DNA of 64,000 bases from Hamiltosporidium tvaerminnensis FI-OER-3-3 (Eukaryota > Fungi > Microsporidia), in assembly GCA_022605425.2 (NCBI GenBank), contig CM061255.1, forward strand, positions 310,001 through 374,000. The letters run 5' to 3'. Positions 4,314 to 64,000 of the stretch are shown here, in pieces. Made by a program: the position numbers and the translations under genes. Below the pieces are notes generated by a model, which saw only the letters and a list, made by a program, of their open reading frames with translations, did not search any database and was not told where the DNA came from. How positions within the stretch are numbered: the first letter of the stretch is position 1; each line of letters opens with the position of its first letter.

Positions 4314-4323
4314 TTGACTCGAA

Positions 4324-11540: not shown

Positions 11541-12278
11541 AACTATAAAAAGCTTTATTTAATAGTATCACATCTTTATAAAACCGTGGCAAATGTTATA
11601 TTTTTTCACGACATTAACGCAGTTTTGGGTTTAACATAAATAAATGCTACTCCAACATTCCATCAGTACCCCTGAGATACCTAGGTCCCAAAGCTTTTCA
11701 TTTACCAGGTGTGTAGAATCTAATTAATAGGCGAGTCGGTTGCCTGGTGTTCTTTAAAGTCCGTTGCATGGAGTGTAATAGAAGACCGAAGCCCCCCTAG
11801 GCTTCCCCAAGCCTATGCAGCCTTCCCACTTACTCTTCCCTTTTTGAACTCAATAAACTTCTAGTTAAGATATATTTCAGAGATTTACATGGAGTCTACT
11901 TAGACAGTGCAATGCCATACAAACAGGTGTAACCATATATTTAGCTTTCGCAGCTTTAAATAATTTTCTCTTTATATCTCCCAGGCGCTAAGTCTTCCAA
12001 CCCGCGTGAGCAAAGCTAGGTTTCCATGCTTTTATATGGCAATTACCTACTAGTTCAGCTGCGGTCCGCAATCTGGTTGGATAAAAAACTGCAAATAAAT
12101 TCGTAGAAAAAGTTTCGCCATTTCGTGGGCCTTTCCTCTTCATAACAACTCCATAGAACAACTGAAAATGTAGTGTCGTTTTATCTCCAACAAAAATACA
12201 AACAATGATCTACACACCAGTTTCACACACTCATTGCCAAGCAGAAAGTTTTTTAAGTGGTTATTCTTCCACCACCTC
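11541..12278 (-). mobile_element. Family L SINE-like element, copy C
   Basis: Reverse complement of copies A/D. 9-bp TSD ATTCAAAGA at 11532-11540 and 12279-12287. Confidence 0.85.
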
Positions 12279-19804: not shown

Positions 19805-21477
19805 CTGTTATGCTCGTTGAAACGAACTTTATTTTACATTTACCAAATAAAAAAAATATCGATTATTATCTTAAAATTCAATATCCGAGCTATATATTAT
19901 AAAATTTTCGATAGGAATTTTAACTCACCTGGTCCGTTTCTCGAATATTGTTTTTAGTCTTTTTTTTCAGAATTATTAGCAGCTTTTGAGCAATTCCCTA
20001 AAAAAAATTTAGGGTTTTCTAACCTGCATATTTCTCTTCCTCTTTAATCGATACTTCTAATTGTTTAGAGCAACTACTCGGCATATTTTGTTAGTCTGTT
20101 CACTTTCCACCTATGTATATTCCATCTCGTCTTCTTTCCCGAAAAAAATTATTCTATTGAAGCGGCTTTTTGTCTAAAGAAATAGTTCTTTTAAACTAAA
20201 TGCTTATTGGTTATTTTATTTATTATATAAATCCAAAACATATATTTACAAATATTTTAATTTAATCAAGTATCAATTTCCATATTTTTCTAATAAAATT
20301 GTTTTATACAATTATTATTGAGGTATAACTAAACTGCGCCTTGAAAAGCCAAACATATATCCTTCTTATCACAACTGTTTATTCATAGTGAAAACTCCTA
20401 GGAATATAAATCCGAATAAATCAATAAATTTTTTTTTCAAAAAACAAAACTTTAGAAAATTAAAAAAAGTTAATTTTTTTTGTATTTCTTATGTGGAGGG
20501 AGGATAACCACATAAAAAACTTTCTGCTTGGCAATGAGTGTGTGAAACTGGTGTGAGATCATTGTTTGGATTTTTGGTAGAAATAAAACCACACTACATC
20601 TTTGGTTGTTCCATGGGAGTTGTTATGAGGAGGAGAGGTCTAAGAAATGGAGAAACTTTTTCTACAAATTTATTTGTAGTTTTTTATGTAACCAGATTGC
20701 AGACCGCAGCTGAACATGTAGGTAATTGCCATGTAAAAGCATGGAAACCTAGCCTTGCTCACTCGGGTTAGAAGACTTAGCGCCTGGGAGATACAAAACA
20801 AAAAACCATTTAAAGCCAGGAAAGCTAAGTAGCAGGTTATACCTGTTGGTATGACATTGCACTGTCTAGGTGGACCCCATGTAAATCTCTGAAATATATC
20901 TTAGCTAGAAGTTTATTGGGTTCAGAAAGTGTAGAGTAAGTGGGAATGCTGCATAGTCTTGGGGGAGCCCAGGGGGGGCTTCGGCCTTCGATCACACTCC
21001 ATGCAACGGACATTAACGAACTCCGGGCAACTGCCTCGCCTATTAATTAGGTTCTACACACCTGGTAGATGAAAGGCTTTGAGACGTAGGTATCGCAGGG
21101 GTTACCGATGGAGTTTTGGGTAGCAGTTATTTATGTTAAACCTAGAACTGCGTTAATGTCATGAAAACAAATATAACACTTGCTACTGTTTTAAAAAAGA
21201 TGTGATACTTTTAAATAAAGTTTGTATTTCTTGATAGAGAATATAATTTAGGAGTAATTTACGAATTTTCTTCCTAATGTTTTTTTGAACAAATAAAATC
21301 TTTTTAGGTGTCTCATGTTCAATTCTACTCACTATTATTGGTTGTGTAAGTTTTATGAACAAGTAAAAAGAGTCAAAGTTTGTTTTGAGCACTCTTATTG
21401 GTGTCTTGTAGTTTTTAACAATTTAAATATTTTGAGGTGAGTCGTCTTCTGAACATTACTGAATTATATAAATGATG
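19805..21477. repeat. Dispersed ~0.9 kb repeat, copy 2, split by family L copy D
   Basis: Homology to 14325-15255 stops at the SINE and resumes after it. Confidence 0.7.
20491..21220 (+). mobile_element. Family L SINE-like element, copy D
   Basis: 12-bp TSD TTTGTATTTCTT at 20479-20490 and 21221-21232. The paralogous empty site is visible near 15000. Confidence 0.88.
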
Positions 21478-26520: not shown

Positions 26521-28770
26521 TAAGTTTTTAATAAAAAAACATATTTTTTACAGAAAGATTTCTGTTTTTACATTCTGTAAATAAATTCTTAGGGATTAAG
26601 TTAAAGAAAACGATCTTTATTCAAAGAATCATAATTTTTTTTTATACTTATAAATAACAATAGCGTATTTTCATTTTATTATATGTGAATTCACCCCTTA
26701 AGTCTCTTATTTTGATCTTATATACGAGTCTTCAGTGTATTTCGATAAGATATTCAATACCATATGTTTTATAGATGACCTCTTTTTTTGTTAGTTATGC
26801 TTTTTATATTGAATAAATTAAAAAAAAATATATTATATTTTTTTAGTTTTTGTAAAAGTATGCCAGTTCGGTCACCGTGAGAAAAACAGCGGAGAATTAA
26901 TAATCTAGACCCGTGAAAAATAATTTCAAAAGGAATATATTTAGTAAAATTACCAGATATGTATCGGAAAGTAAGAGAAGACGAGGTTAACATCGAAAAA
27001 GATGTCTAAATAATATGGTAAAGTATCTAATAACTCATTGTGTGGCAAAGGGGAAATACAACGCGCAGTAGGGAAAAACGAAGAATAAATTTAAACAAAA
27101 CTTAGTTCTTCAAGATCCTAAAGTGCTGCGTTTTTTAGTAAAAAATATGCCACGTTCGCACTAAGAATAACATAACTGAAACTTCATATGAATATTAGTT
27201 GAATACTATTATGATTTTATATGTGTAACATCATCTATGTAAATTCAAAACCATTGCTTGCACCGCAGTTGATTCTTATTTAATACTTTGAATAAATATT
27301 TTAACTTATATAATTGCTAAAGAAACCAGAAGAACTCTAGTTAGAAATTTAGATTACCCTACTTTAATTGATTATAATAGTTTTATATAAAAACATTAGA
27401 GATATATTTGATTACAACTGTTTTGAATTAAATAGACAAATATGTTTTAAACGCTTAAATAAAATAATTTTTGTTACTAATCCTATTTCAAAATGGAATA
27501 ATTTTTTTATCAGACATTTGATTGTCTTGTAGTTACATTAACTCTATATCTTTACCGTAATATGATGGAGGCTAAAATACATTTTAAAACCCTCAAAATT
27601 TAATCTAGTATATTCTACAGCAAAGTATCTCAAAATGAAATTTTATTTTCAATTATTTTACGCACGATATTTTCTTGCAATTCAGAAGATCTTTAATTAG
27701 ATCGTAAAATATATGTTTTATAAATAAATTCCAATTTATTTATTCAAAAAGTAATTAATATCATAAGAAATTTTTCTTAACCATTAGTTTAACCATTTTA
27801 TAAGATAATGTATAGGTTCTTATTCTTGTTATATTTACACATTAGATCTTTAGAACTCCGGAAAATTATAAAAATATAAGTGATACGATATCATTCGTGT
27901 TCAATGAAAGTTTGAATATATTGTTTAAAAAATAAAGCCATCTAAAATTGTATTTATTTGCCATCCGCCAACTTTTAGTAATAAATAATTCATTAATGGA
28001 TATTTTTATTCCTAAAAAGAATATCTCGCAAGTTTTTTTAATTTTGTTAGAACTTAAAGACTTCAATCTTCCAAGGCTCATACAATATATATGTATGTTT
28101 ACTGTTTAAAATAAATACAATCTTTATTTATTAACATTCTTGATGATATTAGACATTTCCATTCCATTGACTGCAAACTCTGAAGTATTGATTAAAATAT
28201 ACGTAAATGAAAATTTTAATACCACTGTAGAAAATATTTGAACTTGATAGATTTAAAAACTTTAATTAACTAAATTTTTTTTTCAAAAGTATGTATCTAA
28301 AATTTAAATTTTTTCTTTTAATACTTTTACACATTATTTTTGTCTTCTAAACCCGACTCACCTTCTATGTTTTTTCAAAGGATTTTTTCGAATGGTCACT
28401 GCAGTTAAAACCAACGTTAAGCTATTTTACCTATTTCCCAAAATCTTCTTTGTTTCTTGGTTCTCAGGAATGAAATATTGGTTTTTAATGTCTTTAAAGT
28501 ACATGCATAAGCTTCATTTATGTTTCATCTTAGCACTTTAATAATTTAAACTAATATAAGACATACGTATCGATCAAAATAAATTATTTCGACGTTCTTT
28601 AAATAATATAGTGATTATTTTTATGTATTATATTTATGGGTAATTAAGCTTTAAGATTTATCTAATAATATTTTGCTCAGGCTGTCGCAAATTTTCGGAT
28701 AAGAAATTATCGAACTCCAAACCTATAAATAAGATTTATTTGATCAAAATACTCCTTACTTCTTTAGTTT

Positions 28771-29120
28771 ATTTTTAGTTCGAACTATTTAAAGTACAAA
28801 TGTTTATATTATTTTTAGTTCGAACTATTTAAAGTACAAATGTTTATATTATTTTAGTTCGAACTATTTAAAGTACAAATGTTTATATTATTTTTAGTTC
28901 GAACTATTTAAAGTACAAATGTTTATATTATTTTTAGTTCGAACTATTTAAAGTACAAATGTTTATATTATTTTTAGTTCGAACTATTTAAAGTACAAAT
29001 GTTTATATTATTTTTAGTTCGAACTATTTAAAGTACAAATGTTTATATTATTTTTAGTTCGAACTATTTAAAGTACAAATGTTTATATTATTTTAGTTCG
29101 AACTATTTAAAGTACAAATT
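28771..29120. repeat. 40-bp minisatellite, ~9 near-identical copies, each with the 12-bp palindrome TAGTTCGAACTA
   Basis: Unit ATTTTTAGTTCGAACTATTTAAAGTACAAATGTTTATATT; two units are 1 T shorter; no spacers. Confidence 0.97.
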
Positions 29121-31835
29121 TTTCATAATTCTTTTACTTTAAAAAGTGAAATTTTATTTTTGCTCGATCTAAAATAAATTTATAAGATTCATTGTTCTAC
29201 AGGTTAACATAAACTTGTTTCTTGATATCCAATTTTAATCCACACACTTATGTATCGAGAAATTCTCGAACCGAGTGATTCCCAATTTATTTTTTAAGAC
29301 CGGAACTTCTTTACATTCCAGAATAATAAGTATAGACTTCTAAAAACTGCCTTATGCAGTCATATTTATTCATCTTTAAGCAATTTTGCATATACTTGCT
29401 AAATGCTATATTTTTTTACTTTGCTGATTATCGTAATGATATTTTCCTTCGCACTTCTAATAAAGTTCTACCTTTAATTTTTACATCATTGGAACTGATT
29501 CAAATCTGTTTTATTTGTGTAAATTAATTCTAAAAAAATAGTGATTAAATTTTTGTGGCAATCCTAATGTATAACCTTTACAAAAAAATTATATCAAATT
29601 TAATCTATCATAAACATCATGAGCTTGTATTATCTTCATTTGAAAAAACTATAACAATCAGCCTAGTTTAGAATATTTCTAGTTTAGAAATAAAGTAATA
29701 TTTGCCAAAATTGTGATTGTAATCGATTAGAAGAAGAAATAATGGTTGTTAAAGAGGTAGAAGGAAATTTATAAACATCTACAAAAATTTTAACCAGAAT
29801 TTATTAAATAAAGAAAATTGTAATTGATTATTTGTTGTAAATTTAGAAGATTGCTGATTCTGTATTAGGCGTGAAAACATAATATAAAAACATAGCAGTA
29901 AATTAAAAATGCGTTGCTTTTACACTTAACTTATAAAAAATTTACACAAATAAATTTCACTAATGTTCATAGCAATGGTTACTCTATAAACAACCTAAAA
30001 TAAATTTATTTTTTTGAATCTTTGAATTAATAGTATTAAGCAATTGCATTTTTTAAATTGATATAAAAGCATTGGTGTATTTAGTCAACGTGATCACACC
30101 GATTTTATATTATACTCTTGTATGACATACTTATTACAATCTTTTATCTAAAAAAATCTATGTAAAGATAGTTCTTTATAGAGTTAGGTTTTATATTCTA
30201 ATCAAGTAACAATAATATCTAGTATAAACAAAAAGATTGAAACGGCAGTATAAATATCGATTTGCATGCACCAAAGAAAGTAAAAAATTTAATAATTTTA
30301 AACAAATCGAAACCAAATATATAATATTCTTTCGAACAATTTATTATAAAGTTTTAGAGTTATATGCTTTGAAAAGATCAAAATAGAAATAATCTGATAA
30401 TAAAAAAACAAATTAAAAATTTCAAATCTAACTAGAAGCCTTTCCGAAAATGTAAAGGTGACCTTCGATAATAAATTCAAAAGAATAGAAAAAGTTAGTC
30501 ACAGAAGAAAAAATATTAGAGATAAACAGAAATAAAATCAACATATTCGCCTATAATGTATCATTTGGTTTTCGTATTTTCCAAAACCATAAAATATAAA
30601 TATATATATTCAAAGCAATAAAAAAAACGCATTTGTTTTAATATTAGAAAAATGAATTGTATAAGAAGTAAAAGTTTGTTTGAAAGCTAACGTAACGAGA
30701 GTAAAAGTACCAATTAAATGTTTAAAAGATATTTTACAAAAAAGATTTCTTCAATATTGAAAATTTTAAGGTAGTTTATTTTTTATGATGTAAAAACAAT
30801 AGCAATTTTAATGAATTTCTTAAAATTATTTGTAGAAACAGTGTTTAAAGGTTTCTAGAATAGACCCTAGGAAGATGTTAGAAACTGTATTAATATAGCA
30901 ATATAGATCTTAATTATTTAAGCGACTAAAATCAATGCAAATGCCGAAATTTGAACAAGATCATTATATTGTTTAGAAAAAAACATTTTTTTAATATTTA
31001 TGATATATCAATATCATTCTAAATAAATTTGATTAAAAAAAGATCTTTTGATATTTTTGACATGATAAAATACTTTTTTAATTTATAAAAAAATTCTTAA
31101 CCGTTGTATGTTCGAAGGAAAAACCTGGAAATAGAAAAACAATTTTTTTAAATAGAACATCTTCTTGGAGTTAAATATTAACGAATGTGATATTTATATA
31201 CACAAAGAAAAATTTGATGTTTAGTATTTTTTCTTTTTTAGATATATGATTCGTTAGTAGAGAATGGGTAAGAAAAGAAATTTGAAATAATTTAACATAT
31301 TTAGAATTCTTTATATTAGAAATAAGTTGATTGATTGATTTTATTTTTTATTGGTGTTATATTCTCTAAATATTTTTAAAAAAATTGATTTGGTGTTAAA
31401 ATTACTGTGAAAATTATTTTTTTCGTATATAAAGGATGTTATTTATAGAACTGTTTACCCCAAATCATATGAGAATTAAAATGTCAATAGAAAACACTAA
31501 GAATGAGACAAATCAACCAGAAATTACAATTGCATGTAACCGTAGAAATCAAGTTGATCTAATCAAATTGATCTACAAACGTACTTTCGAATCATTAACT
31601 TAGTTGTTAATTCACGTGATTTAGATCAATGATCAAATCGATATGGTGTTCTAGTTACTTTGACATGTTCAAGTAACAAATTGGTGTTACATATGGTTAC
31701 TGCTCTGATGCAGATTTTGGAGGTTTTCCGTTGTTACTTTGGTTTCTTGTGCTGCTTTATTCATCGGGATTAAGTTATGGACTCAACGAGTCAATTGTGT
31801 GTGATTTGGATGTGACGTGTAATGGTATATTTGTG

Positions 31836-33140
31836 CAACAGGTTGATTCTGCCTGACGAGGATGCTTGTCTCTGGGATTAAGCCATGCAAGTCTGGTGAA
31901 GCGAAAGTGGAACTGCGAACGGCTCAGTAGAACGGTGATTATTTAATCGTGTAGGAAGGATAACCGCGGGAAACTGTGGCTAATAACACGAGTAAGACGC
32001 CGACCCATCAGTTTTATCGTACGGTAAGGGCGTACGATGGCTTTAACGGGTACGGGGGATCAGGGTTTGATTCCGGAGAGGGAGCCTGAGAAACGGCTAC
32101 CAGGTCTAAGGACAGCAGCAGGCGCGAAACTTGCCCAATTGGAGAGAGGCAGTTATGAGACGTATATTTTGTAACCGGGGTAGAATACCGGTGATTGACT
32201 GGAGGGCAAGTCTGGTGCCAGCAGCCGCGGTAATTCCAGCTCCAGGAGTGTCATAGTGCATTGCTGCATTTAAAAGGTCCGTAGTCAGTGTTGACAGGGA
32301 TGCTAGAAGACACTTTCTTCATGGAGTGTATTGGCATTCTAGGTTAGCATGTAGGAGCGGAAGAGGGCGACTGTATTGCGTAGCGAGAGGTGAAAGTTGA
32401 CGACCTACGTAGGACAAACCGAAGCGAAAGCTGTCGTCCAGTACGTTTCCGGTGATCAAGGACGTAAGCCGGAGGAGCAAAGGTGATTAGAGACCCCTGT
32501 AGTTCCGGCCGTAAACTATGCCAACTGGGTGTTACGTAGTGGTACCCACGAGAAATCAAGTATATGGGCTATGGGGATAGTACGATCGCAAGATTGAAAC
32601 TTGAAGAAATTGACGGAAGGACACCACCAGGAGTGGAGTGTGCGGCTTAATTTGACTCAACGCGGGACAACTTACCAGGGCCAGTTGTATGACGAATCTT
32701 TGATGAGTACGACTAAGTGGTGCATGGCCGTTCACAACATGTGAGGTGACTTTTAGGTTTATTGCTGTAATGTGTGAGACCCTCAGCTACGGCGACTGGG
32801 GACTATAAGTTTCAGGAAGGAGGGGGCTATAACAGGTCTGTGATGCCCTTAGATGTTCTGGGCTGCACGCGCACTACAATGTTATTTCTAGAGGTATATT
32901 GTAAAGATAAAGGATAACTCGGTTGGGATTGCGTTCTGTAATGGACGCATGAACCAGGAATTCCTAGTAGTCGCGTGTCACTAACGGGCGACGACTGCGT
33001 CCCTGTTCTTTGTACACACCGCCCGTCGTTATCTAAGATGGTGCTATGTTCGAAGAGGGTTTTCCTTCTGAGGACGTAGGATTAGATTGGATACAAGTCG
33101 TAACAAGGTTGCTGTAGGAGAACCTGCAGCAGGATCAGTG
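31836..33140 (+). rRNA. Small-subunit (16S-like) rRNA, microsporidian type
   Basis: CAGGTTGATTCTGCCTGAC start, GTGCCAGCAGCCGCGGTAAT, GAAATTGACGGAAGG, TGTACACACCGCCCGTC and AAGTCGTAACAAGG...GGATCA end; ~1.3 kb. Confidence 0.98.
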
Positions 33141-33174: not shown

Positions 33175-34847
33175 ACTCATACAAGGGATCACTTGGCTCC
33201 GTATCCGAGGAAGGCCGGAATAGTTTCCGAGAACTAAGGCCGAACGGCATTTGTAAATGCCTGACTACCCCCTGGACTTAAGCATATTATTAAGGGGAGG
33301 AACAAAAACTAACTAGGATTTCTGTAGTAGCGGCGAGCGAACAAGAAATAGCCCCGAATGTAAGCCTCCGGGCATTGTTAAGATCGTCGTAACGAATTAC
33401 CGGGACAGGTAAGCCATAGAGGGTGATAGCCCCGTAGTGACGAGTAATGGGCAGAGTAGGGTTGCTTGGTAATGCAGCCTGAAGAGGTGGTGGGTTCCAT
33501 CTAAGGCTAAATATGAGCGGAGACCGATAGCGTAATAGTACAGCGATGGAAAGGTGAAAAGCTAAAAAGTGCAAAGACGTGAAATTGTATTGAGTATCCT
33601 GATAACAGGACCCGTCTTGAAACACGGACCAAGGAGTGCATCTGCATAGCAAGTTAAAGGGGGGTTTCCTTTAAGCGTAGCGAAAGCAGATATAGCTGTT
33701 CGGATGCGACCCGAAGGGCTGTGAACTACACCTGGCCAGGTTGAAGCCATTCGAAAGGATGGTGGAGGACCTAAACTTGTTCTGACGCGCAAATCGATGG
33801 TTTGAGCTGGGTGTAGGGGCGAAAGACCAATCGAACAGCCGGGTAGCTGGTTCCCATCGAAATGTCTCTCAGGACAGCAGACACAAGTTATTTAGTATTA
33901 TGCGGTAGAGGAACGGCGGGATGAAAGGGGAGCAATCTCCACATACCGACGAACTGCGAACGTGTACGTGTTATTCTTGTACTAAAGAATAGCGATTATA
34001 TATGTGTCTAGTGGGCGCGTTCTGGTAAGCAGGACGTGCGAAGAGGGATCAACCTGACGTACTGATAAGGGGCCTAATCTGGTTTTTCTTAAGGCCGTAG
34101 ATGAATTGTGACAGTAGGGCGGTGGCCATGGAGGTTGGCATCCGGTAAGAAACGTGTTGCAACGTACCTACCGAATTCATGTGCGCCGAAAATGGACGGT
34201 ACAAGGCCAGACCCGATGCAGTACTTATAGGTAGATGGGCGTGGTGTATGTGCAGAAGGTTTACCGTGAGGTAAAGTGGAGCATACACTAGTGCTGATCT
34301 TGGTGGTAGTAGTTACAATTCGTGTGTGAATCGCGAAGGCTTCAGGAGAAGGGTTCTTCTAAGATTTAATAAGGAGAAGGTTAGCCGGTCCTGAGATCTC
34401 GACAGGGAATCGGGTTGATATTCCCGAGCCATCTAGGTATTTGGCAACAGTAAATATGGTGTTTACGTCTTAGGCACGACAACAAGGAGGTACCCATTCC
34501 TTGTAGCAGTACTGTATGTAGCGTGTTGTACAGAGCAATACAGGCATATGCAATTGTCTTAGCTGGGATCCGTGAAAAGATACCTTTATGACCTAGATGA
34601 CCGTACCGACCGCAGCAGGGCTCCGTACGGTGTATACCGGAAGCGATAGGACAAACGTTAGTTAGGGAATTCGGCAAATTAGATCCGTAACCTCGGGAAA
34701 AGGATTAGCTCTAAGGAATTAGAACTTTTAGTTACGGGGAATCCGACTGTTTAATAAAAACATAGCTTTGTGGTGGTGTAGTACGTGGACACAAAGTGAA
34801 TTCTGCCCAGTGCCCAGCTGTTAAGACAGGTCGGGCTGTATACGCAG

Positions 34848-34901
<54 letters not shown>

Positions 34902-34998
34902 CCTAATTAGTGACGCGCACGAAAGGAGCAACGAGATTCCCACTGTCCCGACTAACAACCTGCGAACCCACGAGCCAAGGGAACGGTCTTGGCTATGC

Positions 34999-35035
<37 letters not shown>

Positions 35036-35311
35036 GTGACGCCGGGGTCTTGTGCAGCTGTAGCAAGGTGGGGCAACTGAAAGACCACTAGCTGTGCAAG
35101 CGACCCGTATTTGTCAGATGGGGAGTTTGACTGGGGCGGTACATCTGCTAGACTACAACGCAGATGGCCTAAGGGTGGCTAACTTCGGAGAGAAACCGAG
35201 GGTGTAGTCCAAGGGCAAAAGCCACCCTGACGTATTACTACACGGTAATACGAGGGGAAACCCAGGCCTAGCGATCCCATTGCTTACAGAGCATCTAGCA
35301 ATGGGTGACGT

Positions 35312-35343
<32 letters not shown>

Positions 35344-35447
35344 AGCCGAGCGACCATAGCGACGCTGCTTTTTGATTCTTCGATGTCGGCTCTTCCTATC
35401 ATGGTGCAGCAGAAGGCACCTAGTGTTGGATTGTTCACCCACTAACA

Positions 35448-35485
<38 letters not shown>

Positions 35486-35731
35486 TAGTTTTACACTACT
35501 GCTACGGTACTAAGGGAGCAGATGCTAGTACGAAAGGAACGAATCTGCAGGACCTCTTGTCGTGCCTATATCTGGTAAGGTACGGGCTAAGCAACGTCCT
35601 GGCACGGAAGAGCTGAAGGCCTCTAAGCTTCAACGTGGCCCTACTGTACTATCTAGCATGAAGACGACGTGCTTGGGTGCTGCAGCTGTAATCCACAAGA
35701 TCGCGAGTGGATGAGGCTAGCAAGCACTCAT
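33175..35731 (+). rRNA. Large-subunit rRNA with covalently fused 5.8S (no ITS2)
   Basis: 5.8S motif GGATCACTTGGCTC runs straight into ACCCCCTGGACTTAAGCATAT. Also GACCCGTCTTGAAACACGGACCAAGGAG, CTCTTAAGGTAGCCAAATGCC and the sarcin-ricin loop AGTACGAAAGGAAC. Terminal helix TGGGTGCT (35674-35681) pairs with AGCACTCA (35723-35730). Confidence 0.97.
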
Positions 35732-35789
35732 GACGAGAGATGATCACCACCTCCACGTGGTTCTCGTTGGGTAACGCCAAGAGTGATCA
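35732..35789 (+). ncRNA. Minimal HDV-like self-cleaving ribozyme abutting the LSU 3' end
   Basis: P1 GACGAGA/UCUCGUU with G1-U wobble; P2 UGAUCAC-C/G-(A)-GUGAUCA; P3 ACC/GGU; L3 UCCACGU; P1.1 CC/GG; J4/2 GCCAA with putative catalytic C at 35777; P4 reduced to GUAAC. Confidence 0.88.
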
Positions 35790-37349
35790 AACATCAAAAA
35801 AAATATAAAGGATTAAAAACTAAAAAAACTAAAAAAAAAGTAAACAAAAAAATGATTTCAAAAAAAATTCAAATAGGATAAATATAACGAAAGAAACATT
35901 TTATCACCTTACAAAATTAGGATCTAAGCAAAAACGCATTTGCTTTTTTTACATAATCTATTTGTGTGACATTTAAATAATTTCCACTAATTCTACTTAT
36001 AAGAACACATACCAGATATGTTTTAAAATATCACTTTTTAAAGATTAGAGTCTTTATGTATGCTTGGATATCTCATTACCAATTTGATTTTTAAATACAT
36101 TTCTTCCTTTATATAAGCAAAAACTATTTTAAAAGACAGCATCGAGATTTCTAATTGAGAAAAATTTAGTATCATATCTATTATTTTTTTCATATGCTTC
36201 AAAGTTTTCAATATTTTTAAACTAAGACATGTACTGTAATGTAATATTTTGCCTACCTTTATATATTATTTTATCAGAAACGTAAATTTTTTAATATTCA
36301 CAAATTGTTTTTCATAAAAAAATTAAAGGAATGTTCGAATAACGATAATTTTTTACTTTAACGAATCATATATATTTCCATTAATTTCATATGCTAGAAA
36401 GATTGAAAATTATAACGGTCTAATAGACTACATATTAAATATCCAAATCTGTTAAAATACCATATATAACATCAAAATTTAAATTTATAAAAATATATAA
36501 ATCACGGAATTAATGTATTCATGTTTAGAATATTAAAATGGCCAAGGATCTTAACCTTTTAATCATTTGAATTATAAATTCAAAAAAAAGAATATATTTG
36601 TCAATCTTAGATAACATATAAATAAAAAAAATAATAAATATATGGACATACATTGCTGTAAAACATAATTTATGTACACATTATAGAAAAAATTTCTTAA
36701 CTAGCATCTCTTTGTTCAAATAAAAGATAGACGACGATGCGCGAAAATACTTTAAAGGATATATAAAAAATTTTAACAAAAAAACTTTATGAGATGAATA
36801 AAACAATATACTAGTGGCTTTATTTATTGAACATTAACTAAAATTTGAGATTTTTCTATAGCGTTATAATAATATATTTGCTAAGTTTTGAATTATGAAT
36901 ATAACTGCACAGAAAAGAAAAAGCAAAATATAGAGGCATATTTGCCAATAATAATTTACTCAAAAAAATAATGGTAGATTTAATAATTCAAATGTTTAAA
37001 ATAGATAGACAAGCATCATTTATAAAATTCTAAAATTTTAATTTTTGGATCTCAAATCAGTATCAAGCATAAATTTCTGTTTGGTAATGAATAAAAAATT
37101 TTTTGTTAACCATTGAAAAATTGGATTTTTAAGTTATCACTTAACGGATCTAATATTAAGAAAATTTAGAAAAACAAATATATTAAAATAAAAGAATGAA
37201 TTGAGTGAAATTTTTGTATTATATAAAAATAATAGATTCTTGGCACTACAGAGTTACCAAATTACATTAAAAAGAAATATATACCAGAAATATAAAATTA
37301 ATTCAATAGATTGAACAAAGACAATAAAAATATAAGGTAGATAATAAGC

Positions 37350-37407
37350 GACGAGAGATGATCACCACCTCCACGTGGTTCTCGTTGGGTAACGCTAAGT
37401 GTGATCA
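37350..37407 (+). ncRNA. Minimal HDV-like ribozyme forming the 5' end of the element
   Basis: 56/58 identical to 35732-35789. J4/2 GCUAA with catalytic C at 37395. G1 directly follows the TSD. Confidence 0.9.
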
Positions 37408-38057
37408 AGCAAAACCCCCTTACGGTTTTATGTTACGACGGAATGTACTATAGTTTTACGTGGCGTTAAGCGCCGTTCCAACGGGAACAGCAAGTTGCTC
37501 AATCGGTGAGCATATTTCTTCTGGGGCGATACAAAGAGGTAAATGCGACTGCGACGCAACGAGATTCTCGGTTTACCTAGGCACTTGTCGATGCTAAAAC
37601 CCTTACTTTAACATCAAGATGAGTCTACCTGAATGTGATTGGATCGAAGATTCCATTAGGAATCAAATTGTGTTTGAAATCTTCTTATACTAAGGAAAAG
37701 AAAGGTATAAAAAGTGCTCTTGGAAGGGGAGTGGCAAGCTGCTGGGCTGCAGCAAATTTGTTCGGCACAGTTAAAGACTTAACAAATCAGAAATGATATG
37801 TTGAAGACTTGACGTGCCGGACGTTAATGTGTAAGTGTGGGATTTTAGGGATTTTTATGTGACCTTCTAGAACCGAAGTCCAAATGTGGATATGGTGGCT
37901 GTACACAGCCGGGTCGGTTTTATTGGATTTTTGTTTTTGAGTGTGGTGCATGGTATGGAAATGAATAGCTTAGTTTCCCTTTAAAAACAATACAACGAGT
38001 AGTGCTGAAAACTTTTTATCAATAAAGCCGAATTTTATTTATTTATTTATTTTATTT
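37350..38057 (+). mobile_element. 708-bp non-autonomous, internally deleted LINE derivative with 5' HDV-like ribozyme
   Basis: 15-bp TSD AGGTAGATAATAAGC at 37335-37349 and 38058-38072. (TTTA)n-like tail. Segment TGTTTGAAATCTT...GTGCTCTTGGAAGGGGAGTGGCAAGC (~37672-37739) is homologous to the LINE ORF2 C-terminus at ~47233-47309. Confidence 0.9.
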
Positions 38058-41000
38058 AGGTAGATAATAAGCAAAAGTATTAAATTATAATGATTGAAGT
38101 TTATGCATAATGGTTCAAAAGTTCTATTTTTATCAAAAAAATTAAATTTGAATATGAATTTTAAGTTAGCACAATTCTAAAAATTATGAAAATATACAAT
38201 AATTGAATGATTATACCCTTTTGTCAATAGTAAAAAACCTATTGGATTATCTTTATAAAAATATAGCAAGCAGACAACATGATTTGTCACAAGGAATGCA
38301 TATTTCCTATAATATAATGGGTTTTAAATTGATCTTAGAACAATATATTTTTAATGTTATATTATATAATTTAAAAATCTTAAAAATCCTTATATTTATA
38401 TGAATTTTATGGTAATTAATGCCAAAATGATAAAATAATATTAAGAGATATTAAAATTGGTTTTAAAATGATTAACATATAGTAATATGACTATAAATTA
38501 ATCCAAAAATTTTGTTTTAGTTCAATTAACGGAAAAATTCATAAATATAAACGAAATAAAAAAGACTTTACAACATATATATTTATTAAATCGCGTCACA
38601 GTATATGAACAGCAATTGTTTAAATCGTTTCACAACAGCTAACAACTTATTAAGTAAACCACAATCTTTTATCCCGTAAAAATTGATTTAAGTCGTTTAA
38701 TGAATGTTTCTTAAAACAGAAATTTTTCCAATCAAAATAGTCGTTAAACCATACATAACCTCCTCTTTTTTTTAATTTCGATGAGCTTTATTAATGTTAA
38801 TGCTGCAATATTCTGCAAGAATAAAATAATACACACAATTTTAATCTATATCTTTAATTTTTATGTACTGTTCATACTAAAACTTGACTAAAACTAGTTA
38901 TAATTACAATTTTTAAAGAAAATAAAAATCCACATGCATAGGGAATATGAAGTAAAAACTAAATAAACCGTAAATATACAAACCAGAATTATATAAATTA
39001 TCTTGAGTGAAATTTATTTGAAATTAACGTCTTTAACTATAGAATGAATGTTACTTTTCTTAAATTTACCATTTGCTGAAGTATTTAAATAATAGGTTTT
39101 CGAAATCATAATGGAAGCGTCTATTCCATAAAAAAATATAGAAAACTGCAAATGTAATTATAAAATGTTTCGTAAAATTTTGTTTTGTAATTTATATTGG
39201 TTTTCTATTCAACTTCCATTGAAGCTTACAATTAAATGACCATGATGTGTAGAACCCTATTAAAAAAAACGTACAAAGTATTGTAAGTACAATATAAAAC
39301 CAAATTTCACGTTTCGGTTTGAATAAAAATAATTATAAATAATTTAAGAAGAGGTTAGTTAATGTCTAATTATTTTATATCCAAGAGAAAAAAATTTTGT
39401 TTTATCAAAATAATAAATACGGAAACAATTTTTTCAGAATAAAATAAAGGTATAAAAAATTTAAAACAATAAAGAATTAGAAGAACATTAACAATTTATT
39501 AAAATTTATGCTAATATTTCATGGTCTAAAACGAAAAATTTTTATTTCGTTAATCATAATAATTTTATACTTCAACTAGCAGTAAAGAAGTAAATCACTG
39601 ACTGAAATTTTATAAATTAGAATCGAATTTTCTTCTTTATAAAGTAAGAATAAGATATATTTTCTCTTTAATTTAAAAAAGTTTTTGTGATCTAAATTCA
39701 CTTTGGAATGCCGTTTTTACCAATATTTAAAACACATTCCCAATCATAGCATAAATAAATTGTAACAGAAACCAATAAAGATGACTTATATGCGCCTTGT
39801 ATTAATCAGATATCAGATCGAAAAAGACGGATATTCCGAGATATTAAAAACAAAAAACAATTCAAAATATACAACTTTAAAATTAATAATTTTATAAACA
39901 AAAAGAAATATTTTAATATAAATGTCGTATATTAAGGCTTTTAAAGCCGTTAATAACTAACCAACTATTGTACATTCATCATGGTGTAATTTATCTTATT
40001 CTAACGTATAAGTTTGACATATATACCACAATTTTCAAGGTTTAAAGCCGTATTTCAGGGTGAGAATATTCCTGTACCCTTCTCAAATATATAAAAAATG
40101 AACATTTTAATCAAAGTAAAACAACTGTCTAGCCTATGATTAAGCCATAAAACGGAACATTTTTACTTTAGCATAACTGCATTCAAACTTTATTTATGTT
40201 ACATTCTTTATATTCACTATATATTCGAAATTTTTTTATAAAATTAAAATATAAGAGTAATAAAGGATGGTGTTATTTTATCTATAAATTACATAGATAT
40301 GATCACAATATATAAAAACAAAATATCTTATAGAAAAAAAGTTTTGAGTTGAAATCGAAGGGGCTGAATAGTCAGATAGAAAAATTCTTGTAGATAATAA
40401 TCCTACTGTTTACTTATATACGAAATATACGATCGTGTATATATTATACTACATTTTAATAAAATATCCGAAAACTTTTTTAATTTTGTATATTTGGCAG
40501 TTGTTTATATAAAAGTTATTTGATCTTGTTACAATGTCAGGCTAATAAAATCAATAATTTTGTGAGATTATAGTGTAATTTTGGGTTTTTCACATGTTAG
40601 GTTCTATGTGCATTTAAAAATAACAAGGCGACCGTGTTTCTTTATATAGTACTAGTCATCGGAACGAGATGATTTGATTTGTAAAAAAGGCTTTTAACTA
40701 GATATATTCTCATGTGTGTTAGTTGCACAAGTAATTAAATCTAACATTGTTAAATTAAAAAAGAAGACGTGTGATACCTACTCTATTATGCTATTATCTC
40801 AAAATTTAATCCCTTCATGTTCGATATAATTCTTTCATAGAACAAGATCAAAATATTTAATTTATATTGTGAGCAGTTTCGCATTAGTCAACCAATATCA
40901 TGTGTTATATCATTTTTAAGCATTAGAATTTATAATATAACCAGAGGGCTTTATAATTTTCTTACATTACATGGATTTTTAGTTAATTTCTTGCTTGGCT

Positions 41001-42424
41001 TTTCTAAAGTTCCAAAAAAGAAATATACTATTAATACGTTAAAGTAAAAAAGATTTTTCTGCTCTATTCATTTTTTTGGTCTTTTATGTGATATTTTAAG
41101 CGAGACCTATGATAGAATAACCATTTTGAAACAGCGTCCAGGAATATTCTTTAACTGAATACCTGTTCTTAAATAGCCCCAAAGATAAGTTTATAGTAAA
41201 CGCGAGGATGGTGTAAAACGTATCATAAACGCCTTTTTATTGTATTATTTTTCTCTGCATAAAGTTTTTCTGTAATACCAGAATTTTTTTGATTTTCAAC
41301 TTCAAAGAAATTCAGATTATTTTAAAGATATATGATTCACTAAGATAATGTAGGTCAGCGTTAGTAACTATTATCTCATGCAAATAATATGTATATTATT
41401 AGATATAATATAAATCAATTACATCGTTTTGTAATTTAAAAAATGGAACTCTCTTATATCCTTAATGAGATTCAGAAAACTAAAAGGATTTTCTTTAAAA
41501 AATATATTTTTCTTTAGATTTTTGTTAATCCTAAAACCAGTTTAAATAACCCAGATAATTTAAAAATTTGTTTTTTTAATGGTGTATATGAAAGATTTAT
41601 ATCTTACAGTCCTAAATGTTTTTTATAATTTTGACTAGTTCTAATCTTTTCGAAACGCAGTAATTGTTAAAACAGATTTGAAAAACATTTTTACGACTAA
41701 CATTTTTCTTTAAATACGTTTTTTACTACAAAAATATAATAGATTTATATTTTAAATTCTTGCATTTTATACAATCATCCTTAGGGTTATATATCTGTTA
41801 AATGTTTATTATATTTGTAAGTAATATATTTATTAGATGGAATATAAATACAAGAATAGAAAGAAAAGCACCAAGCACTCAATAAAGTGAGCAAAGAAAT
41901 GTACAAAAAAATTTAAGCAAAATTTAGATGGTAAATATAGATAGGCATACTTGATATTTTTCTCCATATATTCTGTATTTAGATATAATAAACTAAAAAT
42001 ATTTTTAGTATAATAAGAATAAAAAAGAAAAATGCAGGTATACGATCAGAAGAAATAATAAAATAAGAAAATTTTAAAATTTTCTTTTGAAAATAAATCC
42101 GGGAGTAAAAATATATTTATAAATCGAGAAATAGAAACCAAATGTATGACGACTATTGTGTTGTAAGGCGCCCATGGGCAAAAGAAAAATATCGGGAGCG
42201 GTTGAAAATCGCAAAAAATCAAGATGTGAGAATACGGGTGTGAAGAGTAGGAATTTCGACGACTTTGTTTCCAGCTCATCGAGGACTAGCCACCCTCGAG
42301 TTGTGAGCCCAATCGACTGTTTTTTTCGGCGTCTTCGAAACAGGAGGAGTGTGCGGCAGCCACGCACAAGGAGAGTAAAAAGTGTACAGATAATAGGAAT
42401 GTAAAGAGTTTTTTTGGGACAAGC

Positions 42425-43723
42425 ATGCCAAAGCACACACGGGATGTGCCGCTGACCAGCCAGCGAAGTTTCCCGGAGGAGAAAGAGGCACAGACTTTGT
42501 CTGTTCTTTATGCACTTGCTTCTAAGAAAATAACACTACTTGAAAAAAGAGTGGAAAAATTAGAAGAAGAGGAAAAGAGATATAAAAAAACTCTTATGTT
42601 GGCAAAGACCAACTCGATTGCTTTATGGGTACACTTTAAAGGAATTGAGAAGCTACGTAAAGTACCTAAAAGGTCGCGTAGGTGCCGTACTCACAAGTAC
42701 ATGATAACGGCTGTAGCACCTGTTTCCTTGGTTAGGCTAGAGGCAGGAGCCAGAGACCCTCAGGCTAATCCAGCAGCCAGTGAGTTAGTCTGCAATGCTG
42801 CAGAACTAACAGAGAAACCACTCGAGCAGAATTTGGTGGTAAATGAGGCGAAATCTCAGTCTTTCGGGCCAACTTTGGCTGCACGATCTGCATTGGCAAA
42901 AGCTCGATCTTTGGTTAAACAGATCGTGTTAAGGACAGGCATTTTTACTGATCTGACTGCAAATGCTGTTGACTCTCTTGCTGCTGGAATCTGCCCAGTG
43001 GAAGTGCAGATCTGCAACGCAGCAGAATCTCAAGGCTTACAAGCTGAACGTGCAATGAATGTAAGTCATCAAGGGGCAAGGCCTGTTGAATGTGGTACGG
43101 GCAATACCACACTGCCTCCGATAGCAACTCCTCGTTCTATCGAAAAAAATTTACCTGAAAAGACTTCCGTAAGTGCTTCGGGAAAAGGTCTTAAGGATAA
43201 AAATAAGGAATTATTTGAGAGCAAAGCAACTGGTAACCCAGCCAGTAAACCGAGAGCCGTCAAATTGCAGACTGCTAAAAAGCCTTCCTTCGATCGTACT
43301 AAGGCACCTTCGAAGCAGAGTAGAGGGAAAATTAACCTAAACAGAGCACAGTGTGAGGATGTTGTGCAAGGCAAATCACCATTTGTCTTGAATAGGTTTG
43401 TGCTCCTTTACTTAGTTGGAGTTAAAGTGAACAAACCCGCTTATTTAAGAGCAGTCTTGGAGAATGGGGGCGTTTAATCTCACTATGTAAAGCACGTAGG
43501 CTTCACTAAAGAAGGCCTGTTAGAGTTGCTTGTTAATGCTAACAGTGTGGATAAAGTTAAAGCCATTTTTACAGGTTTTAAAGGTGTTAAGACGTTTGAT
43601 AATTATCTTAACAAAGGCAGTTTCGAAGAGATTGGAGAGCGGTTATCTGAACTTAAGCGCAGACTCTCATGGGTCGAGCGATTTAAAGATAACCCGCCGG
43701 TTAGGAGGTTCCTTAGATTATGA
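42425..43723 (+). pseudogene. LINE ORF1-like reading frame with premature stop
   Basis: ORFs 42425-43477 and 43526-43723 are in the same frame, separated by one TAA. Coiled-coil-like LEKRVEKLEEEEKR. Confidence 0.65.
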
Positions 43724-44143
43724 AGCATATTTGCGCTCGGAATGCCTCTCAAGAAGCCTCGAAAATCTTCTACGGATTAGAAGATGTGGTACTTGAGGAG
43801 CCAAAGAGCTCCTCTAGCCTATAGTCAGGACTGTCAGAACTGTTGACACCTGCCAATAGATATAGCCGTGCAAAGCAGGTCCCGCGGTATACTCTGTCTG
43901 GGGTGTACCGCATAGGCATCGTAGTGTTTTTGCTAAAACACTAGAGACGAGAGGATACAAAGGTAAGCCTGTCAAGCGAGTTATACAGCGAGATGGACGT
44001 AAACGACTTGATGTGACTGTTGAGAGTGGGATAGACCCGGAAACAGTGCAAGCTGTGAGTAGGAAACATCTTGGGTACTGCAAAACCCATACACTAGGGA
44101 GAAAAAAGCTGTCAGAATTTGCACGGAATCGTATAGTAATCTT

Positions 44144-47100
44144 AGATTACTTACGCTGAATGTAAATTCCTTTGGATCAAAACGAGAGGAGGTTCTAATG
44201 CTGCCCGGTAAACTCCACCCAGACATTCTATGTCTCCAAGAGACATTACGCTACACAAGGAATTCTCGGAACGTTATTCCGGGATACGAGGTATTTGAAA
44301 GCTTTGCCAAAAAGGAGGAAAAAGATGGTAGAGGACTGATTTTAGCTGTGCGTCGTAAGTTAGATCTTACGTTATCTTCAGTTGAAGTACATCCTAACTT
44401 CTTAGCTGGAATTGTTTGTGGCAAAAAAGCGACTGGTGGCTAGTTAATAATGCTTGTTGTTAACGTGTACATTCCTCCGAAATGTTCACTATATGGCAAC
44501 AGAGCGAAAACGCTCGAAGCTCTAGGATCTTTTCTTGTTAGTAAAAACAAGAAAAACGGTTTGGATGATATTCTAGTCATGGGCGACTGGAATATGACTC
44601 CAGAAGAGGCTGCTAGGTTCCTGGCTGTCAACAACCTCTATTGCACGAATAAATGGTTATTCGAAGCACCGCGAGCTACACGTGCAGCAGCACACGGCGC
44701 CAATAGATGCATTGACTCTGCCTGTATCCGAAAAGAGAGTGGCGGAGGTAGTTGAGGTGCAAAGGAAATGGGATATCTCGGTTCACCTTCCTGCTACTGT
44801 TGACGTTAGGGTGGACACGCTCACACGAGCTGTACGCAAGAAAGCGCTCTTTTTACGCAAGTTTGTGGAGCAGTCACTTGCTGAAAAGCTTATAAGCTGT
44901 CCGACCTGGAACAGTTTCGGTCACAATACGGATCTTGGGATTTATGTTGCAGAAACTGTTAAAGAAGTAGTAAAAAAGTTAGGTCTTGAAGGTACTTTTT
45001 CAGATGGAAATAGTCTTTTTTTGCCTCGGAAGCTTAAAAAATCTATTAAATATAAACGGAGAGTTGCTCCCGAAATGAGAGCCAGCCGAGCTCATCCGAA
45101 CGCCTATGCTGTCCTCAAACGAAAGTGCGAGGAAATGAAGCGTCTATATAGGCGGCAGCTGAGAATAAAGTGGGCGCGAAAAGGTATTGTGGCGGCAACA
45201 AACCGCTGCATGAGAGACGTGTGGCAGTGGACGAGGAGGTCTGCTGGAATGCCCAAATTCTCGGCTGCCAATCGCACGGTTTTGGATGAAAAAGGCCAAA
45301 TTGCTTCGGATGAGACGACAGTGTTGCAGGTCTGGTACAACCACTTTCGTTCCTTAGCAACAATGAATGATGAGTTACAGAGCAAAGACACTTAAATGGA
45401 GTGTCTTATTGAAGATAACGGAACTCATTAGAATCATTTGATTGCTGTGCAAGAGGTTATTTCAGCGCTGCACAAGTCAGCAAGCAACAAAGCATGTGGT
45501 ATAGATGAGGTAACAGTAGAAGCGTACAAAGCTCTACTAATGGATACTCATGGCGTAAGTCTGATGGATTAGCAGATTTTACATGTGCTGAATGACGCCT
45601 GGACAAATAGAATACCTGACAGCTGGAGAGTGTCAGTCATAGTACCGGTACCGAAGAAAGGTGATTTACGAAAGCCTGGAAACTACCGCGGAATATGTCT
45701 GATTAACACCTTTCTTAAACTGCTGTGTAAGGTTGTGGAACGCCGAATGCGTTTGTATGTTGAGAATAATAACCTCTTGTGCCGGGAACAAGCTGGTTTT
45801 CGTACTCGAGAGGAATGTGTTGCTCAGGTGGCAACTCTTTTGGAAATTCAAAGGAGAAGATTCATTCGAGGTAGAGAGACAGTTTGCCTATTTATCGATT
45901 TCGAAAAGGCTTACGATAGAGTTCCTAATGATCTACTCCTCTTGAGACTAAAAGACAAGGCTATTCTGGAAAACTTCTGAGATTCCTTAAAGATCTGTAG
46001 ACTGATCTCCAGGTTGGTGTTAAATTAGGCGATAAAACAACAAGCCTATTCCCATATAATATCGGTCTGCGCCAAGGCTGTCCGTTATCACCACTGTTAT
46101 TCGATCTTTTTATCGATGAAATTTTTAGAGGTGTTAACGGTATAACATGCGAGGGTCTTAATTATAGGGTTCCGGGTCTGTTGTTTGCCGATGACACTGT
46201 CCTGTTCGGTGATGATGTGGCTGCCGTACAACTCAGTATGGATAGATCATGAGGTGGTGTAATACCTGGGGAACGCGTATTAATATAGATAAGTGTAGGT
46301 TGTTACTTCCTCCAGGTCTTACAGGTAACGTAAGGATAGGTGAAAAAGCAGTCCCGGTGGTCGAAACCTACAGATACTTAGGCATTGTTTTGAACCGCAC
46401 GTTTTCTCTAAAAGAAATGCTCAATGGGAGAAAAAAAGCTGTGTTTGCGGTCCGAAAAATGCTATGCCATTCCTCTGAAGGTCAGAAGTTCTGCTTTACT
46501 TTAAACTTCTGATCATAAAGCATGCATTATACCAATTGTAATGTATGGGAGCGAATTGTGGGGAATGAGCAAGGTCAGAATAGTATCTGTAGGTTGCGGC
46601 GTTACACGTTCTTTGGCAGCAGCTTTTGGATGCGAGAGAATTTTGCCCAGCTGGCAGTTTTCAGAGAGTGTGAGATCCAGCCTTCATATGAAAAGGTAGC
46701 TATGTCACGTGTAAGAGGCTTCTTGAAATCGCAAGAAAGCAGAACGATCATCCGGGACTTGCTAAATGGTAAGTTTACAGCAGGAAGAGAACGTGAGTTA
46801 CTCAAAACCGAATCTGGAAGAAAGCTTATACTGGAAGTCCTTTATCGGGTTTGAGTAACAAAAAGAATGGCCCGTAAATTAAAGAGACTATTGTTAAAAG
46901 GCAAGACCGAGCCGATAAGTCAGTTATAGGTGGCTTACGTAAAAACTTCGGTCTTAATAGTTGATATAAGTGGATATAAGTGGATCTACGCAGAGCTAAA
47001 TAACAGGGTGTTAGCTAGAAGTATGAGGATACTGCGTAGATTCAGAATAGGACTGGTTAAATTTAGTCCGCAACTGGCAGCTTTAGGAAGTTTGCCGATT

Positions 47101-47322
47101 AGGTATAGGGAACGCTGTCTATGTTGCGAGGAACCAGTCCGAGAAACTGTAAGCCATCTAGTGTTCGTGTATAAGAGGTGGAAAGTGGAGCGATGGATGT
47201 TTACGGCTCAGGTTACGAGAAGAGTTGTAAAATGTTTGAAATCTTTTGATGCTGTGGGGAATTTAGGATTGAAAGCGTTAGGAGTGCTCTTGGAAAGGGA
47301 GTGGCAAGCGCCGCAGTTCTAA
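44144..47322 (+). pseudogene. LINE ORF2 (AP endonuclease + reverse transcriptase + CCHC-like), multiple stops and frameshifts
   Basis: APE motifs LLTLNVNS, DILCLQET, VNVYIPP, VMGDWN, RCID, ISVHLP. RT motifs KACGID, NYRGICLI, EQAGFR, FIDFEKAYDRV, GLRQGCPLSPLLF, LFADD, YRYLG. Knuckle CLCCEEPVRETVSHLVF. Confidence 0.93.
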
Positions 47323-47459
47323 ACAACGAATTGTCATACCTGAAGATCTCCAATCGGTCAATATACCAAATAGAAAATAAGTATAAAATAGAAAGTTTTG
47401 ATATTATTTATATCACAAAAATATAATATTTTTATTCTATATTTAAAAACAAAAAAAAG

Positions 47460-61026: not shown

Positions 61027-61734
61027 AAATAAAATAAATAAATAAATAAAATTCGGCTTTATTGATAAAAAGTTTTCAGCACTACTCGTTGTATTGTTTT
61101 TAAAGGGAAACTAAGCTATTCATTTCCATACCATGCACCACACTCAAAAACAAAAATCCAATAAAACCGACCCGGCTGTGTACAGCCACCATATCCACAT
61201 TTGGACTTCGGTTCTAGAAGGTCACATAAAAATCCCTAAAATCCCACACTTACACATTAACGTCCGGCACGTCAAGTCTTCAACATATCATTTCTGATTT
61301 GTTAAGTCTTTAACTGTGCCGAACAAATTTGCTGCAGCCCAGCAGCTTGCCACTCCCCTTCCAAGAGCACTTTTTATACCTTTCTTTTCCTTAGTATAAG
61401 AAGATTTCAAACACAATTTGATTCCTAATGGAATCTTCGATCCAATCACATTCAGGTAGACTCATCTTGATGTTAAAGTAAGGGTTTTAGCATCGACAAG
61501 TGCCTAGGTAAACCGAGAATCTCGTTGCGTCGCAGTCGCATTTACCTCTTTGTATCGCCCCAGAAGAAATATGCTCACCGATTGAGCAACTTGCTGTTCC
61601 CGTTGGAACGGCGCTTAACGCCACGTAAAACTATAGTACATTCCGTCGTAACATAAAACCGTAAGGGGGTTTTGCTTGATCACACTTAGCGTTACCCAAC
61701 GAGAACCACGTGGAGGTGGTGATCATCTCTCGTC
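61027..61734 (-). mobile_element. Mirror copy of the 708-bp ribozyme-headed element
   Basis: TSD GCTTATTATCTACCT at 61012-61026 and 61735-61749. Same flanks as 37350-38057, so it was copied with the arm and is not an independent insertion. Confidence 0.9.
61677..61734 (-). ncRNA. Minimal HDV-like ribozyme (element copy, mirror arm)
   Basis: Exact reverse complement of 37350-37407. Confidence 0.9.
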
Positions 61735-63295: not shown

Positions 63296-63353
63296 TGATC
63301 ACTCTTGGCGTTATCCAACGAGAACCACGTGGAGGTGGTGATCATCTCTCGTC
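63296..63353 (-). ncRNA. Minimal HDV-like ribozyme abutting the 3' end of the second LSU
   Basis: Reverse complement of 35732-35789 except G40 to A (window 63314), just after P1.1. Confidence 0.87.
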
Positions 63354-63599
63354 ATGAGTGCTTGCTAGCCTCATCCACTCGCGATCTTGTGGATTACAGC
63401 TGCAGCACCCAAGCACGTCGTCTTCATGCTAGATAGTACAGTAGGGCCACGTTGAAGCTTAGAGGCCTTCAGCTCTTCCGTGCCAGGACGTTGCTTAGCC
63501 CGTACCTTACCAGATATAGGCACGACAAGAGGTCCTGCAGATTCGTTCCTTTCGTACTAGCATCTGCTCCCTTAGTACCGTAGCAGTAGTGTAAAACTA

Positions 63600-63637
<38 letters not shown>

Positions 63638-63741
63638 TGTTAGTGGGTGAACAATCCAACACTAGGTGCCTTCTGCTGCACCATGATAGGAAGAGCCGAC
63701 ATCGAAGAATCAAAAAGCAGCGTCGCTATGGTCGCTCGGCT

Positions 63742-63773
<32 letters not shown>

Positions 63774-64000
63774 ACGTCACCCATTGCTAGATGCTCTGTA
63801 AGCAATGGGATCGCTAGGCCTGGGTTTCCCCTCGTATTACCGTGTAGTAATACGTCAGGGTGGCTTTTGCCCTTGGACTACACCCTCGGTTTCTCTCCGA
63901 AGTTAGCCACCCTTAGGCCATCTGCGTTGTAGTCTAGCAGATGTACCGCCCCAGTCAAACTCCCCATCTGACAAATACGGGTCGCTTGCACAGCTAGTGG
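63354..64000 (-). rRNA. LSU rRNA, 3' part of second rDNA unit (truncated by window end)
   Basis: Reverse complement of 35085-35731. Confidence 0.97.

Follow-up and report, generated by a model that had tools for sequence, protein, structure and literature searches.

A candidate HDV-like self-cleaving ribozyme at the 3' end of the large-subunit rRNA genes of the microsporidian Hamiltosporidium tvaerminnensis

Few cellular jobs have been assigned to small self-cleaving ribozymes. Several described systems come close to the locus reported here. Theta ribozymes of gut phages (PMC10879173) lack P4, have G1 directly behind a structured RNA, and make the 3' end of that RNA by their cut; they are encoded in phage genomes, behind tRNAs. 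R2 elements possess a 5' ribozyme of HDV-like fold that lies in a Pol I rRNA co-transcript and releases the retroelement RNA (PMC3774820, PMC6765202). The rRNA often gives the 5' strand of P1 in these ribozymes, and P4 is sometimes absent (PMC3774820). R2 itself sits at an internal site in some of the 28S genes, which it thereby inactivates, and its ribozyme stays on the element (PMC3774820, PMC6765202). Many non-LTR elements carry an HDV-like ribozyme at the 5' end (PMC6765202), and R2 SIDE (PMC3414825) and L1Tc/NARTc (PMC3383444) are reported to join a ribozyme head to 3'-terminal sequence of a partner LINE. [quoted passage not shown] When a hammerhead takes the place of the Rnt1 site, termination of Pol I is almost as efficient (PMC3045592). 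Microsporidia have lost approximately half of the yeast ribosome-biogenesis factors (PMC3919561).

We examined the genome of H. tvaerminnensis (21,638,905 bases, 17 contigs), which has been described as 21.64 Mb in 17 contigs with ten rRNA operons, in five pairs whose members face each other tail to tail and enclose specific LINE repeats (PMC12449221). All coordinates given below without a contig or accession refer to the window, the whole stretch of 64,000 nucleotides that was analysed. Rfam models placed two converging rDNA units in it, the first on the forward strand and the end of the second on the reverse strand. The SSU rRNA gene of the first unit spans 31836-33140 (+; RF02542, 1206 bits). 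Its LSU rRNA gene spans 33245-35731 (+) up to a predicted cut at 35731|35732, a site derived from HDV geometry; the RF02543 match covers the whole model and runs from 33245 to 35733. In the second unit, the LSU gene is represented by its 3' part at 63354-64000 (-; RF02543). Helix 101 (H101; 35674-35730, +) is the last LSU helix before the ribozyme fold, and most of its pairs had probabilities near 1. Behind the fold is an A-rich trailer (35790-36120, +), whose gap-free columns differ between the ten units right from its start.

Positions 35732-35789 (+) match a minimal, P4-less HDV-like ribozyme fold with G1 at 35732 and a candidate catalytic C at 35777, as judged by pairings, descriptor, Rfam models, and folding. 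P1 pairs 35732-35738 with 35762-35768 (7 bp, a G1-U wobble and six Watson-Crick pairs), and P3 pairs 35749-35751 with 35759-35761 (3 bp, as the HDV-like class requires). L3 (35752-35758, 7 nt) is of the consensus U-C-C-N-C-G-Y type, and P1.1 forms 2 bp between L3 and the bases after P1 (C35753/C35754 with G35769/G35770). P2 pairs 35741-35747 with 35783-35789 (7 bp) and is extended past a bulged A35782 by C35748-G35781. J4/2 carries C35777 followed by A35779/A35780, unchanged in 15 of 15 intact copies, and six bases in place of P4 separate P1.1 from the candidate catalytic C. All sequence and structure features of the HDV-like class were thus present: P1 (6-7 bp in the class, with G1 paired to U or C), P3/L3, P1.1, P2 (5 bp or more in the class), and the C and A of J4/2. 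The earlier note, which first proposed a nested double pseudoknot of HDV/CPEB3 type here and again in the second unit, was accurate on both points. Every pairing that it named was verified at its position, and the counterpart fold where the second unit's LSU ends (63296-63353, -), identified by sequence match and descriptor, has a single G-to-A change after P1.1 relative to the first.

Four sites in the window satisfied the HDV descriptor, against 0 in 3.17 Mb of dinucleotide-shuffled rDNA, and a chance match was rejected on that basis. Three Rfam models, HDV_ribozyme RF00094, HDV-F-prausnitzii RF02682, and drz-agam-1 RF01787, matched the same 60 nt (E 0.012, 0.072, and 5.3, respectively), with P1, P3, L3, and J4/2 aligned. 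Bit scores were below the gathering score in each case (26.4/50, 24.9/44, and 13.6/37), and membership in these families was rejected by score. In the folding model, the minimum-energy fold of the isolated 58-mer was non-native and nested, which counts against the cleavage reading; P1 and P3 formed once the LSU end was attached and the whole ribozyme was present. HDV-like ribozymes without P4 are active (PMC10879173; PMC3774820). By all sequence criteria, 35732-35789 is an HDV-like ribozyme, and we consider it very likely to cleave.

The locus resembles the theta ribozymes in lacking P4 and in the position of G1 directly behind a structured RNA whose 3' end the cut would make. In contrast to them, it lies in a nuclear genome and behind LSU rRNA. 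Membership in the theta group was rejected because the neighbor is a microsporidian LSU rRNA and the exact ribozyme core was absent from the viral contigs searched. The likeness to R2 extends to the rRNA-derived strand of P1 and the missing P4. However, the H. tvaerminnensis ribozyme sits at the gene end in every unit, where a plain trailer follows instead of an element body, and the LINE of its spacers has two ORFs and an APE-type endonuclease where R2 has a single ORF and a restriction-like endonuclease. Membership in R2 was rejected because the site is not the internal 28S site and the type of LINE differs. We also rejected loss of P4 as new for eukaryotes, since the silkmoth R2 ribozyme and an abalone ribozyme are also without it (PMC3774820).

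The earlier note had stated that its proposal would fail if most rDNA copies in the genome lacked the motif; it was found at the LSU end in 10 of 10 rDNA units. Across these units, 1 of 58 columns varied in the ribozyme and 1 of 119 in the last LSU stretch, compared to 106 of 297 gap-free columns in the trailer (14 in the first 46 and 92 in the next 251). The difference between ribozyme and trailer had a Fisher p of 4e-9, a value that overstates the case, given that the ten units were not sampled independently of one another and that the trailer, rich in A, mutates readily. Conservation ended exactly at the last base of P2, and several trailer haplotypes began directly behind it. The 15 intact copies of the ribozyme differed by four substitutions, which fell on the junction that follows P1.1, on J4/2 beside the catalytic C, and on the bulge; no helix was broken and the catalytic C was spared. 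One reading of this pattern is that the fold is a relic, the inactive or irrelevant head of a retroelement that gene conversion recently carried to all units along with the LSU. The spacers do show extensive conversion between units, yet a conversion tract would also have homogenised the first trailer bases, where several haplotypes begin right after P2, and inactivating changes were found in 0 of 15 intact copies. We consider this reading improbable. Fixed differences persist between the copies of the ribozyme in the rDNA and those at the head of a SINE-like element (below); homogenisation of the rDNA copies is therefore not due to the SINE. Because gene conversion from the LSU would not halt at the last P2 base, we infer that selection acts on the ribozyme fold at the LSU end.

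The boundary between LSU and ribozyme is not a clean one. The earlier note took the helix formed by 35674-35681 and 35723-35730 for the last of the LSU. These segments do pair with high probability, as the base of H101; however, helix 99 (H99) closes after it in the conserved LSU fold. The 5' strand of H99 is at 35650-35655 (+), as placed by alignment to the archaeal LSU model and by the pattern of four prokaryotic LSU ends, and its partner would be 35733-35738, within the 5' strand of P1. In the LSU-model alignment, G35732 fell at the last conserved LSU positions and the 3' strand of H99 fell on 35733-35738. The pairing of the two strands repeats the pattern of the four prokaryotic LSU ends (an outer pair, A-G, two pairs), with a probability of approximately 0.03 by chance. 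The 5' strand of P1 is therefore probably rRNA sequence, and a cut at G1 would remove the strand that closes H99 and shorten the canonical LSU end, with H99 and P1 predicted to compete. Either the cut yields an LSU without H99, or H99 keeps the ribozyme off in ribosome-bound transcripts. P1 plus P3 was far more stable than H99 in the folding model, and a five-pair version of H99 formed when the ribozyme was incomplete. The base of H101 is longer in this LSU than in the prokaryotic model, and it is a matter of speculation that this could compensate for a lost H99. The complementarity of H99 appears to have been kept, as would be expected if the mature LSU retains this strand, and this argues against a mature end made by the ribozyme.

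A near-identical ribozyme, which the earlier note does not mention, as it also does not mention the overlap of P1 with H99, heads a retroelement in the spacer. This non-coding element of 708 nt (37350-38057, +) starts at G1 of its ribozyme (37350-37407), ends in an AT-rich tail, and is flanked by a 15-bp target duplication (37335-37349 and 38058-38072); the empty site is present in a unit on contig C1. A mirror copy lies at 61027-61734 (-), with its ribozyme at 61677-61734, identified by sequence match and descriptor. We found five full copies of the approximately 700-nt element at three independent sites, all in rDNA trailers and 0.5 to 1.6 kb behind LSU ends, as well as truncated copies. All three insertions begin exactly at G1, and 2 of 3 have exact 15-bp target duplications. 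Repeated insertions with this start indicate that RNA with a 5' end at G1 was reverse-transcribed more than once, and they are the best available, if indirect, sign of cleavage in vivo. A degenerate copy at C14:914048-914700 (-) has a ribozyme head with many small deletions and no intact core, from either decay or assembly error.

The SINE-like element has 3' segments in common with a LINE family of the rDNA spacers. One decayed copy of this LINE, identified by sequence comparison and domain match, is at approximately 42100-47330 (+). The family has two ORFs, with an exonuclease/endonuclease/phosphatase (APE-type) domain before the RT; 7 of 7 long copies are in rDNA spacers, and among LINE proteins with a named source the closest are those of H. 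tvaerminnensis. All insertions of LINE and SINE have the same orientation as the rDNA unit nearer to them. Two LINE copies begin approximately 370 nt behind G1. The spacer LINE copies had no ribozyme head of their own at the 5' end. Homology of the 5' body of the SINE to the LINE was rejected, as the score was within those of shuffles. The combination of a ribozyme head and partner-LINE 3' end is that reported for R2 SIDE and L1Tc/NARTc, here in a new host group and LINE clade; the likeness covers the SINE, not the copy fixed in the rDNA.

These elements bear upon the main rival to our preferred reading (below), in which the ribozyme is active but is an R2-like passenger that mainly serves retroelements. 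H99 and assembly proteins would hold the P1 strand in most transcripts, proteins would trim the LSU to approximately 35738-35742, and a minority of transcripts cut at G1 would feed the LINE and SINE of the spacer. Consistent with this are the kept H99 pattern and the five-pair H99 formed with an incomplete ribozyme, the restriction of a LINE family with no ribozyme of its own to rDNA spacers in sense orientation, and the LSU-like P1 strand borne by the SINE head. However, a purely selfish role poorly explains purifying conservation in 10 of 10 units, whose rDNA copies are not themselves retrotransposed, and the greater stability of P1 and P3 relative to H99 also speaks against it. Such a role is somewhat unlikely in our estimation.

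In a tree, relatives of the spacer LINE grouped apart from the other LINEs of the genome (support 98/96), although the rows were picked as top matches, a choice that favors this outcome to some extent. One member of the group is found in tandem units in Trachipleistophora hominis, and the next unit is headed by a full HDV-like ribozyme with P4 (JH993876.1:4394-4486). Its P3/L3 and the bulged A in P2 are the same, its P1 is compensated, and the junction that follows P1.1 is similar. Approximately 27 nt of P4 are duplicated just 5' of G1 (JH993876.1:4370-4490), and this ribozyme is apparently undescribed. A complete HDV-like ribozyme with a long P4 was also found in ENA ERZ25039523:9114-9225 (G1 at 9114), on a contig with a related LINE. 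Both ribozymes head units of the LINE clade away from any rDNA. The P3/L3 core is common among HDV-like ribozymes, and sharing it does not prove descent. Since a ribozyme with the same core is linked to the same LINE group in T. hominis, a retroelement source is the simplest reading for the rDNA ribozyme, and the comparison points to one. The rDNA ribozyme probably came from, and still serves, retroelements.

The opposite history, with the same function, would be an old 3'-end ribozyme of microsporidian rRNA that was later borrowed by LINEs and SINEs seeking rDNA. The first seven bases of the SINE match the position of the LSU H99 strand, and its head is probably rDNA-derived; in addition, tail-to-tail rDNA pairs around specific LINEs are also present in G. 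vavrai (PMC12449221). Against this order of events, ribozymes of the subfamily that bear P4 head LINE-clade units off the rDNA in T. hominis and ERZ25039523, and the wide distribution of 5' HDV-like ribozymes in non-LTR elements (PMC6765202) points the same way. We consider it very unlikely.

The earlier note had asked whether such a ribozyme goes along with the presence or absence of Rnt1 or another RNase III. In this genome, no Rnt1-type enzyme was found; the only two RNase III domains are both in a 1241-aa protein of the Dicer type, and no dsRNA-binding domain (dsRBD) was found. A Rnt1-type RNase III thus appears to be missing, and only a very diverged orthologue could escape. Loss of Rnt1 may be general in microsporidia, so its absence alone does not require a ribozyme. 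Most eukaryotes have two XRN-family genes. One was found in this genome (C2:555186-555992, open frame of 672 aa), together with at least one gene for a Clp1-family kinase; with both present, a trailer with a 5'-OH could be phosphorylated and degraded.

Our preferred reading, to which we give a probability of approximately 0.55, is that a ribozyme domesticated from a retroelement makes the 3' cut of the pre-rRNA, in an LSU-end arrangement known here from one species. The ribozyme would belong permanently to the rDNA transcription unit. Once Pol I has moved beyond 35789, the RNA would fold into its nested double pseudoknot and cut 5' of G35732 in most transcripts, leaving a pre-LSU that ends one base after helix 101 with a 2',3'-cyclic phosphate, and a trailer with a 5'-OH. 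This cut, which would be or lead to the mature end, would take over the job of Rnt1 in yeast. Degradation of the trailer would then be a route to Pol I termination; alternatively, Pol I may read on, and the trailer would provide RNA for the sense-oriented LINE and SINE copies. The proposal is similar to the yeast system (PMC3045592) in its co-transcriptional 3' cut and exonuclease entry; it differs in that the cut would be made by RNA, at or inside the end rather than downstream of it, and would leave a 5'-OH rather than a 5'-phosphate. A broader version, in which the pre-rRNA makes its own LSU 3' end by a retrotransposon ribozyme that replaces the RNase III step, and in which this is common to the microsporidia with tail-to-tail rDNA pairs, such as those reported around specific LINEs in G. 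vavrai (PMC12449221), is one that we put forward tentatively and with more doubt than confidence.

The interpretation in the earlier note was supported in part, namely for the fold, its presence and conservation in all ten units, the lack of an Rnt1-type enzyme, and the yeast precedent for a ribozyme in place of the Rnt1 cut. In the literature searched, in which few subscription journals were covered, we found no published HDV-like ribozyme in microsporidia and no natural one at an rRNA 3' end, and neither of the H. tvaerminnensis genome papers mentions a ribozyme. The ribozyme class itself is known; the rDNA context and the likely job are new. If the preferred reading is true, this would be the first natural ribozyme in rRNA maturation as far as our searches reach, and it would clearly exemplify the domestication of a transposon component for a core process. 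The question of how microsporidia assemble ribosomes after the loss of factors, posed as open in PMC3919561, would gain one concrete answer, and the confinement of the LINE family between rDNA pairs could be explained as well.

Searches of other sequence collections gave mixed results. In a metagenome scan with a loose core pattern, which was saturated by chance matches, no microsporidian LSU was among the matches listed. A search for prokaryotic 23S ends followed by the ribozyme core, with one core pattern, gave five matches, none of which folds as HDV. One LSU reading-frame bait was without matches, and the other led to an rDNA contig that ends before the LSU end. The word shares of runs X15-X18 were 0.89-0.90, which is compatible with the ribozyme being present or absent. 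In Logan SRR27489474 (630-850), a relative of the spacer LINE lies approximately 130 nt behind a microsporidian-type SSU 3' end; this position suggests that the LINE group seeks rDNA in other microsporidia as well. An HDV-like core in SRR27489474 was not counted as a ribozyme, as its P1 was imperfect and it had no canonical P1/P1.1. In Logan SRR26809236 (60-300), the 5' UTR of a LINE relative has a tandem structured motif that the HDV descriptor rejects and that could be another type of ribozyme.

Other observations concern the rDNA and its surroundings. Approximately ten 40-bp units are arrayed at 28693-29171, 2.7 kb 5' of the SSU, and may be a Pol I enhancer or promoter repeat. A dispersed repeat family of 700 nt, unrelated to the ribozyme element, is present in both orientations at 4323-5026, 11597-12275, and 20491-21197. 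In a contig C1 unit ending near 1234010, the part of the LSU equal to window positions 35350-35500 differs at many positions and resembles a conventional eukaryotic 28S there, possibly from host reads polished into the assembly.
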